Shown here piece by piece: positions 26,432 through 53,003 of a stretch of DNA of 64,000 nt. The position numbers and the translations under genes were made by a program. Every line of letters begins with the position of its first letter. Within the stretch, counting starts at the first letter, position 1. Location of the stretch: the sequence record MW373745.1. One strand, written 5' to 3'. The notes beneath the pieces are model-generated. The model was not told the origin of the DNA. It worked only from the letters and a program-made list of their open reading frames with translations, and made no database searches.

Positions 26432-27364
26432 TTGGGATTATTTGGTTCTGTCAGTAGTGTTATTTCAGGTGTTGATTTACCAAAAGCTACGAAAACTTTC
26501 TCGGCCAACAATGGTGCTGAAATTCTAAAATTTACCAAATCTTTAGAATCTGATAATTTTAAACACAAACAAATAATATTGACTGTTTATGACCCAAATG
26601 ATTTCTATAAAAAAGTCAAAGATGCTATTGGTCAAAAAATGTCAAGCCTGATGACAGCAGGAACTTCAGCATTTTCTGGTGATGGGTATGATTCTTCAGA
26701 TGCTAGCCAAACTCTAAAAGATGCTGGTCAAGACATTGTAGATATGTCAGCAGTCAATATATTATATACAATACATTTACCATTAATGAATGCGTTCCAA
26801 GAACAAAACTCTCATAATTATTCTGAAGATACTGGTATTTTAGGTTCTATGTCAAATGCTGCTAATGAATTATCAAGTACAGCTAGTTCTGGTATAATTG
26901 AAGCTTATGGTAGATTTGGAGATTTTGGTGGAAATACAGATAATATGGCATTTGCTCCGCAACTACCACAAGTAGATCCATTAAAATGGCAAAACTTTAA
27001 AGGTTCTAACTTAAGAACATTTCAATTTACTTTTAAAATATCTCCCAGAAACATAGATGAAGCTTCTAATATGATGCGAATATTTTGGTTATTAAAAAGA
27101 AGTTCATACCCTAAAAAAGAAGCTGGTGGTGTCTTATTGATACCGCCTGCAAGAATAGGTGTCCAATTTTCAAACCCACTGCTACATAAGTTGATAGCTC
27201 CTGGTATTTGTGTAATAGATGGTGTTTCTATGGTTTATGAAAACGGTGATGATATTGCTGTGACATTAGATGGAGTTCCAAAGAAAATAGAGTTTACATT
27301 ATCATTAAAAGAATTCCGTCAAAAATACCAGGATGATTGGAATTTTGAAAATGCTAGTCTATAG
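26432..27364 (+). CDS. Baseplate tail-tube cap (T4 gp48-like)
   Basis: LRTFQFTFKISPRN..EA...PP...CVI...P....LSLKE. Confidence 0.7.
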   Translation: MGLFGSVSSVISGVDLPKATKTFSANNGAEILKFTKSLESDNFKHKQIILTVYDPNDFYKKVKDAIGQKMSSLMTAGTSAFSGDGYDSSDASQTLKDAGQDIVDMSAVNILYTIHLPLMNAFQEQNSHNYSEDTGILGSMSNAANELSSTASSGIIEAYGRFGDFGGNTDNMAFAPQLPQVDPLKWQNFKGSNLRTFQFTFKISPRNIDEASNMMRIFWLLKRSSYPKKEAGGVLLIPPARIGVQFSNPLLHKLIAPGICVIDGVSMVYENGDDIAVTLDGVPKKIEFTLSLKEFRQKYQDDWNFENASL

Positions 27365-47916: not shown

Positions 47917-48296
47917 GTACTGAAAATATAATAAAAGAAGGTGCTATACTCGGTTCTTTAAGTGGATCTGCATTATTAGGATTGATGGTTTTTGTCTTAG
48001 CTGGGATTGCATGGCATTTATATAAAACTTTACATAAAGAAGCTGGGGAAAGAACAAAAGAACTTATAAGTGAAACCAAAAATACTAATGTTCTTATTAG
48101 AGAACAAATTGCAGTATCCAGAGCAAGTAGCGATAGTTTGGTTAAATTTATAGAAACACATTGCTCAAAAACCAATGACAAGCTAGAAGCTATAGAAACA
48201 GATCTTATGAGAATGGATGAAAGGCTTGTTAAGCTTACTCAAATAAGAAATGATGAATTAAGAAGTATTTTTAAAAAAAAGGAAAACAATGACTAA
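47913..48296 (+). CDS. Holin-like membrane protein
   Basis: One N-terminal TM segment plus a coiled coil, in the lysis region. Confidence 0.45.
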   Translation: MSTENIIKEGAILGSLSGSALLGLMVFVLAGIAWHLYKTLHKEAGERTKELISETKNTNVLIREQIAVSRASSDSLVKFIETHCSKTNDKLEAIETDLMRMDERLVKLTQIRNDELRSIFKKKENND

Positions 48297-48663
48297 AACA
48301 GAATTAAAAAGGGTTTGTGTAAAGCCATACGATAAGGACAGGTTTGAAGTGATACAAGATTATGAGTTTATTTTGCCAAATTACAAAGGCATTGTACCAC
48401 AAGGTTTTAAAACTGATGGAGCGAGTATTCCACGCCTTTTTTGGTCTTTGTTTCCACCTTTTAAAAGTGAGTATTTTAGTGCTTGTGTAGTGCATGATTT
48501 TTTATGTGAAAAAGCAAAATCAAGAAAAGATTACAAACTTGCTGATCTTGTTTTAAAAGAAGCAATGCAAGCTTTAGAAATAAATAAATTTAAGATTTTT
48601 GTTTTTTATTGCTCTTGTAATTTATTTCATCAGATCAAATGTTTAATAAAGGGGATAAGATGA
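48289..48663 (+). CDS. DUF1353-family protein
   Basis: VPQGFKTDGASIPR..W...ACVVHDFL. Confidence 0.8.
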   Translation: MTKTELKRVCVKPYDKDRFEVIQDYEFILPNYKGIVPQGFKTDGASIPRLFWSLFPPFKSEYFSACVVHDFLCEKAKSRKDYKLADLVLKEAMQALEINKFKIFVFYCSCNLFHQIKCLIKGIR

Positions 48664-49943
48664 GCGTGGATTTAAGAGAAATTGCCATAAAAACAGAAGA
48701 AATCAATAAAGATTTTAGTGAAGCTTTAGAAATTTTAAAAGAACTTTTTAAAAATGGAGTAAAACCAAGCGATGAAAGTATTAAAAATGCTATAAATGAA
48801 GTTTTAACAAGTTTTAACTTTATAAAACAAAGTGAATTAAAAGAAAAACTAGAAGCCTTGCTAGAAGAGCTTGGCATCAATGCAAATATCAATGAAGAGA
48901 GTTTAAAAGAAGTTGTATTAAAAGTTGTTTTAGAAAATCAAGAAAGTTTAAAAGGTGATAAAGGAGATCCTTTTACTTATGAAGATTTTACAGAAGAACA
49001 GCTTAAAAATTTAAAAGGGCAAGATGGAGCTAAAGGAGCTGATGGTAAAAGTGCTTATGAACTTTGGCTTGAAAATGAAGAAAACACGGGAAAAAGTCAA
49101 GATGAATTTTTAGAAAGTTTAAAGGCTCAAACACCAACAAAAGAAGAAATTAAACCTATTATAGAAGAGATGCTCGAAGATATGAAATTAAATTTAGGCA
49201 TTAATGGAATAAAAGTATCTAATTCTATTCCCACTCCAAAAACAAAAGCTAATGTTAATGATTTAATTATAACTTATAATGAAAATGTAAAACAACTTTG
49301 GCTTTGTGTGGCAAGTGATGATAAATACACAAGTTGGATTAATTTGCTTGGAAATGAAAATATTACAGCACAAGAGTTGATTATTATTAGTTTTGATACA
49401 AATTTAAATAGTGGTCAATATGGCGGATGTTTAAGTGATTTGCGTTTTGGTTTTGAAAATTCTTTAGCAAGCACTACGCAAATTATAAAAGGACTTAATG
49501 AAGGCAGTTTTTTAATCACTAAAGATGGAATGGGTTTAAAATCTAAAAATTATACTGAAGTTAGCGTTCTTTCAAAACCAAGTAAAAATCAAATAGAAGG
49601 AAATATCAAAACGAGCGGAATTTATAATGATCCTGCTTGGCATAATATTACCAATGCTTTAAAAAAATATGATGGCAATGCAAATGAATGCTGTCTTTGG
49701 GCTTCTAATATAAAAAATAGTGTAAGTATAGAGCTTTTTACAAATGAAATTCCTATGAGTCTTTTTTATAGGCAAGCTGGATATTATGGAAATGTCAATC
49801 TTTCAAATATAAAAATGCAAAAAGCCCTTAGAGTTCAAAATGAAATTATAGTCGAGAGAAGCTTTATAGGAATAAAAAAAGAAATTGATAAAACTACCTA
49901 TGGTGATAATGCTTTTTTATTTGAATTTGAAGAAGAAAAATGA
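48660..49943 (+). CDS. Collagen-like repeat tail/receptor-binding protein
   Basis: KGDKGDPFTYEDFT..Q...LKGQDGAKGADGKSAYE; C-terminal domain homologous to 10320-10971. Confidence 0.65.
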   Translation: MSVDLREIAIKTEEINKDFSEALEILKELFKNGVKPSDESIKNAINEVLTSFNFIKQSELKEKLEALLEELGINANINEESLKEVVLKVVLENQESLKGDKGDPFTYEDFTEEQLKNLKGQDGAKGADGKSAYELWLENEENTGKSQDEFLESLKAQTPTKEEIKPIIEEMLEDMKLNLGINGIKVSNSIPTPKTKANVNDLIITYNENVKQLWLCVASDDKYTSWINLLGNENITAQELIIISFDTNLNSGQYGGCLSDLRFGFENSLASTTQIIKGLNEGSFLITKDGMGLKSKNYTEVSVLSKPSKNQIEGNIKTSGIYNDPAWHNITNALKKYDGNANECCLWASNIKNSVSIELFTNEIPMSLFYRQAGYYGNVNLSNIKMQKALRVQNEIIVERSFIGIKKEIDKTTYGDNAFLFEFEEEK

Positions 49944-49991
49944 GTTTAAATCTAAAAATAAAATACAAAAAATAAAAAGAAAGGAATTATA

Positions 49992-50453
49992 ATGAAAATA
50001 ACAATTAATAGAAGATACACAGGAAAAACTTGCGTTATTGGTAAATTTAAGGTTTTAGATGATGATGATAAAATTCTTTTTGAATGTTTTTCTTTGGAAG
50101 AAGACAAAGAAGGTTTAGAAAGTGGCAAAGATTTAAGAATACCTGAAGGAAATTATAATTTAAAAAGACATAGTCCTTCACGATTTGAAAATACTTTAAG
50201 AAGTATTACAAAAAAAGATGATGATACAATGATAAATGTTTATAATGATGATGTGCCATCAAGTCGTGCAATTTTAATACACTGGGGAAACACTGATAAA
50301 GACACACAAGGTTGTATCTTGCTTGGGCTTACCAAGGATAATAATAATGAAAGTGTCGGTCAAAGCAGGCAGGCTTGCAAAGAATTTTACGACTTAATGC
50401 ATGGTAAAAATCTTGAAGACATTAAATTAGAAATAACAAATGAATTAGCATGA
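49992..50453 (+). CDS. DUF5675-family protein, candidate endolysin
   Basis: IPEGNY...RAILIHWGN..KDTQGCILLG; lies between holin-like and spanin-like genes. Confidence 0.7.
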   Translation: MKITINRRYTGKTCVIGKFKVLDDDDKILFECFSLEEDKEGLESGKDLRIPEGNYNLKRHSPSRFENTLRSITKKDDDTMINVYNDDVPSSRAILIHWGNTDKDTQGCILLGLTKDNNNESVGQSRQACKEFYDLMHGKNLEDIKLEITNELA

Positions 50454-50488
50454 AAGGAGATAAAAGTTTAAGTAGGTTAAAGTTTACA

Positions 50489-50504
50489 CCCCGCTTTTGC
50501 GGGG
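50489..50504 (-). terminator. GC hairpin terminator of the small toxin-like ORF
   Basis: ccccgc-tttt-gcgggg. Confidence 0.65.
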
Positions 50505-50509
50505 CAAGG

Positions 50510-50575
50510 CTAATAAGCCTTGACTATAATTACACAAAGTAGTATAATTATAATTATAAACTTCTGGTATGACAT
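50510..50575 (-). CDS. 21-aa Ibs-like hydrophobic peptide MSYQKFIIIIILLCVIIVKAY, putative type I toxin (not in the ORF track)
   Basis: SD AAGGTGG paired with upstream CCACC; minus-strand TATAAT at 50645-50650; downstream terminator. Confidence 0.65.
   Translation of the reverse strand: MSYQKFIIIIILLCVIIVKAY
50520..50548 (+). promoter_or_regulatory. Antisense sigma70 promoter inside the toxin-like ORF
   Basis: TTGACT-17 bp-TATAAT. Confidence 0.7.
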
Positions 50576-50681
50576 TTATATCACCACCTTTCGCGGGTGG
50601 AATTTAGCCATAGGGGGTCAGACCTACGGCTAACCCTTAGGGGTATTATATAAAAACCTTACTTAAACTTCTAAAACAAAT

Positions 50682-51101
50682 ATGATAAATCTTTTATTTG
50701 GAAATGCAAAGCTTTATATAGCCTTAGCTTTAATGGCAATCTTAACAGGGTATTTTTATCTAAGACTTGATAGCACTCAAGCAAAATTAGAAAAAAGTCA
50801 AAGTGATTTAGCTTTGGCTTTAAAAATAAATGAAAATAATCAAGAAAAATTAAAAGAATTAAATCAAATTCATAAAACAGAATTAAAGGCTTTAAATGAA
50901 GCAAACAATCAAAAAAATCAAGTACAAGAAAGGGTGCAATATGTTAAAGAATACATTTATAAAAGCAATGAAAATAATATTACCAAGCTTTTTAACGATG
51001 TCGTTGATAGGTTGTGGGATGCAAACTCAACAAGTAGTAACCAAAATAGAAATTCAAAAAGTAAAAATTCCGCAAGAACTACTAACATTAAGTCCTCTTG
51101 A
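50682..51101 (+). CDS. Inner-membrane spanin (Rz-like)
   Basis: N-terminal TM segment and coiled coil, downstream of the lysin candidate. Confidence 0.6.
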   Translation: MINLLFGNAKLYIALALMAILTGYFYLRLDSTQAKLEKSQSDLALALKINENNQEKLKELNQIHKTELKALNEANNQKNQVQERVQYVKEYIYKSNENNITKLFNDVVDRLWDANSTSSNQNRNSKSKNSARTTNIKSS

Positions 51102-51216
51102 AAAGCCAATAGCAAAAAATGAACTAGATATTTTAAATGCTTATTCTATGCTTTTTTACAAATACAAACAGTGTGAGATACAGATTAGAAAGATTAAGGA
51201 GTTAAATGAGGAATGA
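50968..51216 (+). CDS. Outer-membrane spanin lipoprotein (Rz1-like), overlapping Rz in another frame
   Basis: MKIILPSFLTMSLIGC lipobox, Pro-rich body. Confidence 0.6.
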   Translation: MKIILPSFLTMSLIGCGMQTQQVVTKIEIQKVKIPQELLTLSPLEKPIAKNELDILNAYSMLFYKYKQCEIQIRKIKELNEE

Positions 51217-51229
51217 TCCTCATTTACAT

Positions 51230-51511
51230 CTATTCTAGAACTTCTGCTTTGTATTTTTCATACTCGGCTTCACTGATACACCTTTTTTCTTTCAATCCTC
51301 TTAAAAATTCTAAATCTCTCATTTTAGATATTTTTTGTTCTCGTCTATAAGGTTTTTTAACCGCTAAATACAAAATACATCCAAAAATGCCAAAGAAAAA
51401 CCCAACTATACCCCACCATAAGCTGCTCATATTTCTTTGTTTAGCATCATAAGAAAGTTCAAAAGCACATACAACAGCAAAGATAAAATACACAAGTCCT
51501 GCAATTTCCAT
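51230..51511 (-). CDS. Two-TM membrane protein with a SHOCT-like tail (moron)
   Basis: Two hydrophobic segments; C-terminal L..LKE...ISEAEYEKYKAEVL. Confidence 0.6.
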   Translation of the reverse strand: MEIAGLVYFIFAVVCAFELSYDAKQRNMSSLWWGIVGFFFGIFGCILYLAVKKPYRREQKISKMRDLEFLRGLKEKRCISEAEYEKYKAEVLE

Positions 51512-51527
51512 TTTTACTCCTTTTTAA

Positions 51528-52190
51528 TTAAAAATTGTCACATTTTACTTTATATATTCTTAAATTCTCATTTTCTACATCGTGATTAGGCACTTGGTAA
51601 CATTCTTTAAAATTATCACCTTTTAAAATCTTAGTGTAAGAGCTTGGAATAGCAATATTGTTTTTTATTCTTTGTGGATTATTGTCATAATTAACCAAAT
51701 TTAAAACTTCTAAACTTCCAAGCTTTAAAGCTACTTGTCTTTCTCTTTTTTCAATTTTATTCCAAACTCTTTGATTGATTTGTGGATTTTGTGGAGTAAT
51801 GTTGCTCATTAAAAAAGTGCTTCTTTGAGCTTGAGTTGTTTTTCTCATTGAAGCATTAGAAAGAGTGTGTCCCCTGTCGTAACCGCTGTTTTTATAATCA
51901 CTCCATGTGGTGCGGTATTTTTTAGGAATATTTGTATCATCTTCAAAGCGTGGGCGTTTTTTGATTTGTTCGCCTTTTAAATTATCCGCTTCTAATCTAT
52001 AAGCTACGGCTTTAGTGCCTTTTAAAGAATAATCATAACAATTAATATAATAAAATTTATCCAAAACTTGTGAGCAGTTTTGTTTAGTAAAATACTTGGC
52101 AAAATCTTCGCTTGGTTTGTATTGTGTATAATCAGCAAAAGCTAGAGTGGATAATAAAGATAAGATTATAAGTTTTTTCATTTGTTTCAT
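51528..52190 (-). CDS. Secreted DNA/RNA non-specific endonuclease (His-Me finger)
   Basis: Signal peptide; YDRGH motif; FLMSNITPQ...NQRVW. Confidence 0.9.
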   Translation of the reverse strand: MKQMKKLIILSLLSTLAFADYTQYKPSEDFAKYFTKQNCSQVLDKFYYINCYDYSLKGTKAVAYRLEADNLKGEQIKKRPRFEDDTNIPKKYRTTWSDYKNSGYDRGHTLSNASMRKTTQAQRSTFLMSNITPQNPQINQRVWNKIEKRERQVALKLGSLEVLNLVNYDNNPQRIKNNIAIPSSYTKILKGDNFKECYQVPNHDVENENLRIYKVKCDNF

Positions 52191-52849
52191 ACCCTTTCAA
52201 TTTGATTTAAAAATATCTTTGCATTACAAGAGCAAACCACTACACCTATAAATACATAATTTTTTAAAGCACTTTTTTTTATTTTTTTATCTCCAAAATT
52301 AAAATTATCACTGCTAATAACTATATCATCATCGAAAGCATTTTTTAAAATACGTTTGCAAAAAAGCTCGTTATCATTATCGCGAAAAATTACTACATCA
52401 GCATTTCTTATCTTTTCTAGTGAATTTTTAGTAGTATCTATGATGATAAAAGAGCCATTTTGTATAAAAGGTTCCATGCTTTCACCATAAATTTTAATCA
52501 TATCATATTGTGTTTTATAAGGCACTCCTAAAACATCAGTTAGAAAAGCTTTATCTATGTTTATAAGCTGAAAATTTTCATTTTCATTTGCATTGCCAAA
52601 ACCTGCACTTGCACAAATGTCTGGAAAATAACGAATGGTTATAGTATCTTTGTGGTGATGAATAGAGACTGAATTATTAGCCTTTTTTAACTCATAGTAT
52701 TTTTTCAATGCTTGAGCTGAAAGTTGTTTATTGTTCCGCCAATTATTTGCATTATTTTTTTTATATCCTAATCTCTCTGCTACTTCTTCTAAACTTTTTA
52801 CATTAAAAAAAGTTTTTAATTCTTCTACTAATTCATAATAATTTTCCAT
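52187..52849 (-). CDS. CI-like repressor (HTH plus S24 peptidase)
   Basis: N-terminal HTH, CASAGFG cleavage region, GESMEP, FCKRI. Confidence 0.9.
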   Translation of the reverse strand: MENYYELVEELKTFFNVKSLEEVAERLGYKKNNANNWRNNKQLSAQALKKYYELKKANNSVSIHHHKDTITIRYFPDICASAGFGNANENENFQLINIDKAFLTDVLGVPYKTQYDMIKIYGESMEPFIQNGSFIIIDTTKNSLEKIRNADVVIFRDNDNELFCKRILKNAFDDDIVISSDNFNFGDKKIKKSALKNYVFIGVVVCSCNAKIFLNQIERV

Positions 52850-52867
52850 AAATATAACCTTGAAAAT

Positions 52868-52967
52868 ATATTGACATATATTTAAAATTAATATATAATT
52901 CTATACATAATTAATTTTTAAAAACAAAATAATTATTTAACTAAGCAATAAGTATGCCAAGTTTTAA
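52868..52967 (+). promoter_or_regulatory. PR-like promoter/operator block, copy 1
   Basis: TTGACA (52871)-17-TATAAT (52894); about 100 bp nearly identical to 53816-53916. Confidence 0.8.
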
Positions 52968-53003
52968 ATTAAAATTGTATTATGTTATTTTAAGGATTTG
53001 AAA

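Follow-up and report, generated by a model that had tools for sequence, protein, structure and literature searches.

A minus-strand peptide and plus-strand RNA cassette resembling type I toxin-antitoxin modules in Campylobacter jejuni prophages and its relatives on conjugative plasmids

The window analyzed here is the whole 64,000-nucleotide (nt) stretch of DNA taken from sequence record MW373745.1. The region of interest in it is 100% identical to the Campylobacter jejuni prophages CJIE4-2, CJIE4-3 and CJIE4-4 and to CJLB-13. Between two genes of this region lies a cassette of about 200 bases, extending from window position ~50459 (the 3' tail) to ~50673 (the upstream inverted-repeat arm), which has the gene of a short peptide on the minus strand and an antisense RNA on the plus strand. 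This cassette is probably a type I toxin-antitoxin-like module. The anatomy of the module, its conservation and its transcription in a homologue are well supported; the peptide is a putative toxin and a benefit to the prophage is presumed. An earlier note on this DNA had proposed a complete sense/antisense small open reading frame (ORF) module of the type I toxin-antitoxin kind at this place, and the coding signal of the family, the covariation of its RNA helices and the start sites of a homologue bear the proposal out. The minus-strand -10 box, the leader hairpin, the ORF and the plus-strand TTGACT-17-TATAAT promoter were all found where that note had put them. Its limits of 50485-50655 hold these features, but the unit is slightly larger than that.

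Taken singly, most features of the cassette are at chance level for AT-rich DNA. Six promoter-like sites were counted where chance would give 6.6, and 83 ORFs of at least 20 amino acids (aa) are present within 7 kb. The observation is raised above chance by four other results, namely the fold of the 181-nt minus-strand RNA (minimum free energy (MFE) -68.1 kcal/mol, z -7.98 against shuffles), the single covariance-model copy in the window, the existence of a conserved and covarying family, and the mapped starts of a homologue.

Family distribution and coding signal

A sensitive BLAST search with a 201 bp query gave plasmid matches at 425 places in 301 records, 297 of them from Campylobacter and 260 conjugative. 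Up to six copies were found per plasmid, with almost no annotated features under the matches. Plasmid copies come no closer to the window copy than ~82% identity, and the pTet-type copy recurs at an identity of at least 99% in 152 plasmids. From ten BLAST-found copies, a 30-nt IUPAC pattern which fixes the core positions was derived. It occurs once in the window and zero times in shuffles. The same pattern matched 47 viral-contig stretches and 31 genome stretches, the latter belonging to C. jejuni, C. coli, newer Campylobacter species and enterohepatic Helicobacter species. One stretch from a prophage of Helicobacter pullorum is 71% identical and possesses a homologous small ORF with TTGACT-17-TATAAT on the opposite strand.

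The copies sit where such modules are expected, on conjugative plasmids and in prophages, and many plasmids hold several divergent copies. On plasmids they occupy the intergenic gaps of type IV secretion operons, sometimes with two or three divergent copies per gap, and some prophage copies are situated in the structural-gene region. As a rule the peptide gene runs against its neighbours: 139 of 153 flanking long ORFs are on the other strand (58 of 72 after crude de-duplication). Degenerate copies are few (3 of 52 distinct ones); one has lost the stop codon, and two have lost the start codon along with a leader deletion. On conjugative plasmids, two or three divergent copies of ~75% identity stand head to tail in a single gap with a Bro-N gene on one side and a type IV secretion gene on the other (L004 2958-3648 and L005 2957-3452), and the same plasmids carry additional copies elsewhere.

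The conservation of the ORF was analyzed in the distinct members. In 48 of 52 distinct mRNAs a start codon (ATG, TTG or GTG) of the core frame was found 3-8 nt downstream of the Shine-Dalgarno (SD) sequence, while the same start test gave 0 and 4 in the other two frames. The ORF has 19-23 codons in all but one, and subfamilies differ in length by whole codons. Each of the 37 distinct peptides has a polar residue close to the N-terminus and an invariant lysine three residues from the end, and the 4th to 15th residues from the C-terminus are hydrophobic in 89-100% of these peptides. Leucine codons vary only synonymously, and one leucine position uses three synonymous codons, including a two-position change. 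The start, stop and frame evidence forms the stronger coding argument, because the core of the ORF is also a promoter and the search pattern fixed those bases. Judged from these comparisons, the small ORF reads as conserved coding sequence across the family.

Four family peptides searched against Pfam and NCBIfam at E values up to 10 gave no relevant family; one weak SNARE match (E 0.31) was far below the cutoff. No solved-structure chain matched the peptide. An exact look-up of 10 family peptides in a collection of 15 billion proteins found none of them, and the matching prophage records have no annotated feature between the two genes flanking the cassette, in agreement with the earlier description of the locus as unannotated. 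A holin role was also considered for the peptide and was ruled out, as its gene runs against the late operon, is missing from sister phages and is mostly plasmid-borne.

RNA structure and transcription

RNAalifold on a plain MAFFT alignment showed almost no structure because the helices were misaligned, and covariance-model alignments were used instead. The models were built from six well-aligned copies. Model R1 comprises the leader hairpin (H1), the stop-codon hairpin and the 3' hairpin, while model R2 has a long-distance 5'-3' helix in place of the leader hairpin. R1 found exactly one match in the window (188.8 bits, E 1.5e-33) and 86 copies across the collected loci, among which the window copy scores close to the best members. 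In the R1 alignment 92.7% of the cells are paired compared to 72.7% in shuffles. Changes on both sides were observed in 19 of the 22 pairs, with a covariation score of 0.445 against at most 0.116 with slid partners. Compensatory changes are found in all 11 pairs of the leader hairpin, with 90-97% of the cells paired among 61 distinct sequences, and in 6 of 6 pairs of the 3' GC hairpin, with 93% paired. The stop-codon hairpin is paired in 92% of the cells and has little covariation (2 of 5 pairs).

The sequence of the 3' arm of the leader hairpin recurs in the 3' tail of most subfamilies, which enables the tail to pair with the 5' arm. At the family level this long-distance helix of R2 is paired in 98.2% of the cells with compensatory changes in 7 of 7 pairs. 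When duplex energies were compared among 22 subfamily representatives, the pairing of each leader with its own tail was superior to permuted combinations, only 1 of 20000 permutations being as good. From these alignments, one leader segment appears to have two conserved and mutually exclusive partners, an arrangement familiar from the hok and aapA1 mRNAs. The predicted probability of being unpaired is 0.15 for the family SD compared to 0.25 in shuffled contexts, and it is lower in 19 of 22 subfamilies (p ~1e-4), although the pairing register of the SD hairpin differs between subfamilies. Occlusion of the SD is thus supported by the folding models at the family level. The predicted antisense RNA forms four stem-loops (-31.4 kcal/mol, z -3.09). 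A search of the 4227 Rfam families over positions 48000-53000 gave chance-level matches only.

Primary 5' ends of the plasmid pTet of C. jejuni 81-176 have been mapped by differential RNA sequencing (Dugar et al. 2013, PMC3656092). The start at 26519(+), listed in Table S5 with a height of 85985, has the exact TTGACT-17-TATAAT of the family upstream, and the start at 26600(-), with a height of 483, is positioned 6 nt downstream of the homologous peptide-mRNA -10 box (PMC3656092). The antisense start signal is thus in ~180-fold excess over that of the peptide mRNA, and the two transcripts overlap by 82 nt. In the same study the plus-strand RNA was named CJpt2, an 82-nt small RNA (sRNA) candidate, with neither an ORF nor a toxin-antitoxin reading (PMC3656092). 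The view of the earlier note that no such module is described in Campylobacter prophages holds in part, the antisense RNA of the plasmid homologue being already catalogued under this name. The pTet copy and the window copy belong to different subfamilies. By homology with pTet, the antisense RNA of the window copy is predicted to start at ~50556, 8 nt after its -10 box, matching the expected start near 50555, and the peptide mRNA at ~50637-50639. The overlap is then predicted to be ~84 nt, made up of the 64-nt untranslated region (UTR) followed by 20 nt of coding sequence.

Another sRNA, CJnc90 of strain RM1221 (1071193-1071289), is given as Northern-positive in Table S11 (Dugar et al., PMC3656092). 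Its probe resembles the family leader, covering the 3' arm of the hairpin and the linker, and no match to this probe was found in the viral contigs. From this resemblance, CJnc90 may be an antisense RNA that belongs to a further family member, at the border of an integrated element.

Proposed mechanism, known systems and alternative explanations

In the proposed mechanism, a weak promoter would give a tightly folded minus-strand mRNA of ~180 nt for the 21-residue hydrophobic peptide. The SD would be held in a hairpin and the 5' arm of the leader hairpin would alternatively pair with the 3' tail. By analogy with the hok and aapA1 mRNAs, the full-length mRNA would be kept untranslated until it is trimmed. 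The near-consensus promoter within the ORF would produce an abundant plus-strand RNA complementary to the first ~84 nt of the mRNA, from the 5' UTR through the SD and start codon to the sixth or seventh codon. Once the sense and antisense RNAs had paired, the mRNA would not be translated and the duplex would become a target for degradation. If the element were lost or antisense synthesis stopped, synthesis of the peptide would follow, with damage to the inner membrane, and the outcome would be selection for keeping the prophage or plasmid. Processing of the mRNA and of the duplex RNA, the relative stabilities of the two RNAs and the stabilising role are presumed in this scheme.

Judged by its layout, the cassette resembles AapA/IsoA and hok/Sok and does not appear to be a member of Ibs/Sib. 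The AapA/IsoA systems of Helicobacter pylori (Arnion et al. 2017, PMC5416894) share the phylum Campylobacterota with it. In both, the antisense RNA is wholly within the mRNA, where it covers the 5' UTR and the beginning of the ORF; the mRNA is predicted to be strongly folded, with an occluded SD and a 5'-3' interaction (weak in the window copy); and both are found near mobile elements. AapA peptides have ~30 aa (22-30 in one review) compared to 21 here, and the AapA1 structure did not come up in the peptide search of solved-structure chains, the cassette being likened to AapA/IsoA by layout. In the AapA/IsoA systems the mRNA is activated by 3' trimming and the duplex is degraded by RNase III. 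Structural homologues of aapA/IsoA are reported on a C. jejuni plasmid and chromosome (Arnion et al. 2017, PMC5416894), and the C. jejuni locus mentioned there may belong to this family. The cjrA/cjpT pair of plasmid pVir is described as the only experimentally validated type I toxin-antitoxin pair in Campylobacter (Shen et al. 2016, cited in PMC7826846). It is plasmid-borne like most family copies, and the family promoter is absent from the tabulated pVir start sites.

The earlier note had likened the cassette to Ibs/Sib of Escherichia coli. Both have a very short and very hydrophobic peptide with an aromatic last residue and an abundant cis-antisense RNA, and the peptide, with 21 aa, is counted as Ibs-like in size and hydrophobicity (Ibs has ~18-19 aa). 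Membership in that family was not borne out, since Pfam and NCBIfam gave no match and the antisense RNA is predicted to cover no more than the 5' UTR and the 20 nt at the beginning of the ORF. Sib spans the entire ibs ORF, whereas the antisense RNA of the cassette starts 20 nt into the ORF and runs away from the remainder. Ibs/Sib also belongs to a different phylum, and the cassette differs from it by long structured 5' and 3' UTRs with 5'-3' pairing. The hok/Sok system of plasmid R1 and its relatives follows a post-segregational killing logic. It is plasmid-borne, as is most of the cassette family, and in both a 5'-3' fold-back, in which one leader element has alternative partners, would hold the mRNA inactive. 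Hok has ~50 aa and its overlapping leader ORF is the target of Sok; unlike Sok, the antisense RNA of the cassette would cover the translation start of the toxin itself. The Hok/Gef model of Pfam did not match the family peptides, and the ORF here has 21 codons.

Several points weigh against a type I toxin-antitoxin-like module in the window. The cassette can be lost, because phages of the CJIE4-1 type have deleted ~167 bp, which is most of it. The stretch of the ORF that is invariant is at the same time the antisense promoter, and part of the peptide conservation may be promoter conservation. The covariation alignments were fitted to the structures tested, which favours them; the low scores of the slid-partner controls indicate that the signal is real. 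The long-distance pairing of the window copy is short (-12.4 kcal/mol, rank 16 of 22). The CCACC/GGTGG hairpin, proposed in the earlier note to sequester the SD, is present and has the family-level support described above, but SD pairing in the window copy alone is not significant (0.07 vs 0.13 in shuffled contexts). The GC terminator of that note exists as a hairpin but has no T-run, and the intrinsic-terminator scan did not call it. The mapped start sites belong to the pTet homologue and not to the prophage copy, and no sRNA candidate is listed for strain RM1221 beside CJIE4 genes (PMC3656092). CJpt2 was undetected on Northern blot (PMC3656092), a negative which is weakened because the probe overlies the opposing promoter, at or beyond the 3' end of the RNA. 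This probe is an exact match to the peptide-sense strand of two family members (L066 and L078).

The cassette could alternatively be a portable strong promoter or RNA element whose plus-strand RNA reads into downstream genes, spanins in the prophage and type IV secretion genes in plasmids, the ORF being a by-product of an AT-rich promoter. Such an origin is improbable. It agrees with the strand bias of the neighbours, as the plus-strand RNA is co-directional with the flanking genes in most contexts, and with the classification of the pTet start as also internal to cmgB5 (Dugar et al. 2013, PMC3656092). The region from 50556 to the spanin start at 50682 has no clear terminator, the promoter itself is the most conserved part of the ORF, and inverted-repeat ends are found in a good share of distinct copies. 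A by-product ORF is hard to bring together with the in-frame start at a fixed spacing from the SD, the conserved stop position and the whole-codon length changes of the 48 copies noted above, nearly all of this being confined to one frame, and the opposing promoter has a mapped start site in the pTet homologue. The promoter-element explanation is weakened further because the covarying helices of the peptide strand, including the 5'-3' pairing, only make sense for a minus-strand RNA. The roles of a portable promoter and of a toxin-antitoxin module are in any case compatible with each other.

The adjacency of a family member to the spanin genes, or its position within them, in three prophage backgrounds (window, L006 and H. 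pullorum) would also suit a non-toxic small membrane protein tied to phage lysis as a timing or accessory factor and merely regulated by the antisense RNA. Since most copies are on conjugative plasmids within type IV secretion operons, further prophage copies are found among the structural genes, the gene runs antisense to the late operon and CJIE4-1-type phages have no copy in the lysis cassette, a lysis protein is very improbable. It is also unlikely that the window copy is an inactive relic of a once-functional module. A relic would fit the low rank of its 5'-3' pairing, the occurrence of degenerate copies elsewhere and the deletion of most of the cassette in sister prophages; yet the two promoters are undamaged, the SD, the ORF with its start and stop codons and the three hairpins are all preserved, five phage records (CJIE4-2 to CJIE4-5 and CJLB-13) have the cassette with 100% identity, and its R1 score is near those of the best family members.

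Beyond the type I toxin-antitoxin-like reading, a broader proposal is tentative and rather doubtful. The cassettes may form a distinct and unnamed miniature type I toxin-antitoxin family specific to Campylobacterota, often bounded by short inverted repeats, spreading between conjugative plasmids and prophages, inserted antisense to operons, found in arrays whose copies have diverged and also acting as strong internal promoters. Each cassette would then be an addiction module and a transcriptional insert together. Type I toxin-antitoxin systems are considered scarce in Campylobacter, and if the reading as such a module is true, one unannotated family would be present in hundreds of conjugative plasmids. 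The pTet plasmid of strain 81-176 carries the tetracycline-resistance gene tetO (PMC3656092). The family would be a plausible contributor to the persistence of plasmids, including the pTet type, and of prophages in a major food-borne pathogen. A function would also be assigned to the orphan sRNA candidate CJpt2, and the family would be the second epsilonproteobacterial case of mRNA control by a 5'-3' conformational switch, with natural sequence variation large enough for studying the switch by comparison alone.

Genomic setting and cassette features

The features of the cassette and the neighbouring genes are given in Table 1. As the earlier note had it, the cassette is inside the lysis region, between the DUF5675 gene and the pair of Rz/Rz1-like spanins. 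Past the spanins, the opposite strand carries genes for a small membrane protein, a DNA/RNA non-specific endonuclease and an S24 CI-like repressor; the last two abut each other (51528-52190 and 52187-52849, both on the minus strand), downstream of the lysis genes.

Table 1. Predicted features of the cassette and neighbouring genes, in window coordinates
Feature	Position	Strand	Remark
Tail-fibre gene	48639-49943		neighbour before the DUF5675 gene
DUF5675 gene	49992-50453		directly before the cassette
3' tail, can pair with the 5' arm of H1 (core ACCTAC, 50472-50477)	50461..50478	-	doubles as the downstream inverted-repeat arm
GC-rich 3' hairpin, terminator-like, without U-tract	50489..50504	-	covarying pairs
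Small hairpin across the last codons and stop codon	50506..50521	-	in MFE structure
21-codon ORF plus stop, MSYQKFIIIIILLCVIIVKAY, putative membrane toxin	50510..50575	-	
Antisense RNA promoter TTGACT-17-TATAAT, inside the ORF	50520..50548	+	11/12 matches, best in the scanned region
Predicted antisense RNA, ~80-95 nt	50556..50650	+	start set by pTet homology
SD hairpin, CCACC with GGTGG (SD at 50584-50588)	50584..50600	-	in MFE and centroid structures
Leader hairpin H1, 11 bp	50604..50633	-	in MFE and centroid structures
Predicted peptide mRNA (64-nt 5' UTR, ORF, 3' UTR)	50459..50639	-	covariance model R1
-10 box TATAAT of the peptide mRNA promoter	50645..50650	-	column nearly invariant in 60 aligned copies
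Upstream arm of the imperfect terminal inverted repeat	50655..50673	-	overlies the -35 region of the peptide-mRNA promoter
Rz-like spanin	50682-51101		directly after the cassette
Rz1/LysC-like gene	50896-51216		overlaps the Rz-like spanin

The position in the lysis region is genuine and recurs in other prophages. The related prophage L006 has a copy from another subfamily between an endolysin and the same spanin pair, and the H. pullorum prophage has its copy between the Rz-like and Rz1-like genes. DUF5675 may be the lysin of the present phage, because an endolysin (phrog_894) fills the DUF5675 slot in L006 (235-621) ahead of the same spanins. In CJIE4-1 and three similar phages, just 61 bp separate the DUF5675 and spanin genes (L002 1654-1716 in CJIE4-1). 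This arrangement is an internal deletion and not an empty site, because the ends of the cassette are retained. One CJIE4-1-like phage, CC12667_12684_ph15, has no copy in the lysis region and contains a diverged family member elsewhere (L085 684-872), beside a gene of 403 aa; this slot is the one occupied by the commonest subfamily of the viral contigs.

The terminal inverted-repeat arms are ~18 bp long and imperfect, and their best local match scores 26 compared to a shuffle 95th percentile of 21. Arms of 11-19 bp above the shuffle 95th percentile were found in ~39% of distinct copies, the window copy included. They are confined to Campylobacter subfamilies and absent from Helicobacter subfamilies. 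From sequence, such arms hint at a mobile or recombination-prone unit. Both arms are also able to pair on a plus-strand read-through transcript.

A further minus-strand promoter-like site within the ORF, ATGTCA-17-TATAAT (10/12 matches, 50547-50575), probably results from the near-palindromic AT run at the antisense -10 box. One pattern match, in a metagenome-assembled genome of Deianiraeaceae (L072 1518-1547), was rejected as a chance match, as it has no start codon, family context or model match. In Campylobacter fetus plasmids (L084 1476-1652), a family member overlaps the annotated start of the gene of a large hypothetical protein, which suggests a mis-called start. In the H. pullorum record (L003 2877-3371), one annotated coding sequence of 164 aa crosses the cassette, and its C-terminal part is lipoprotein-like (Rz1-like). 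The start of this coding sequence is likely mis-called, and the Rz1-like part probably begins at an internal TTG.

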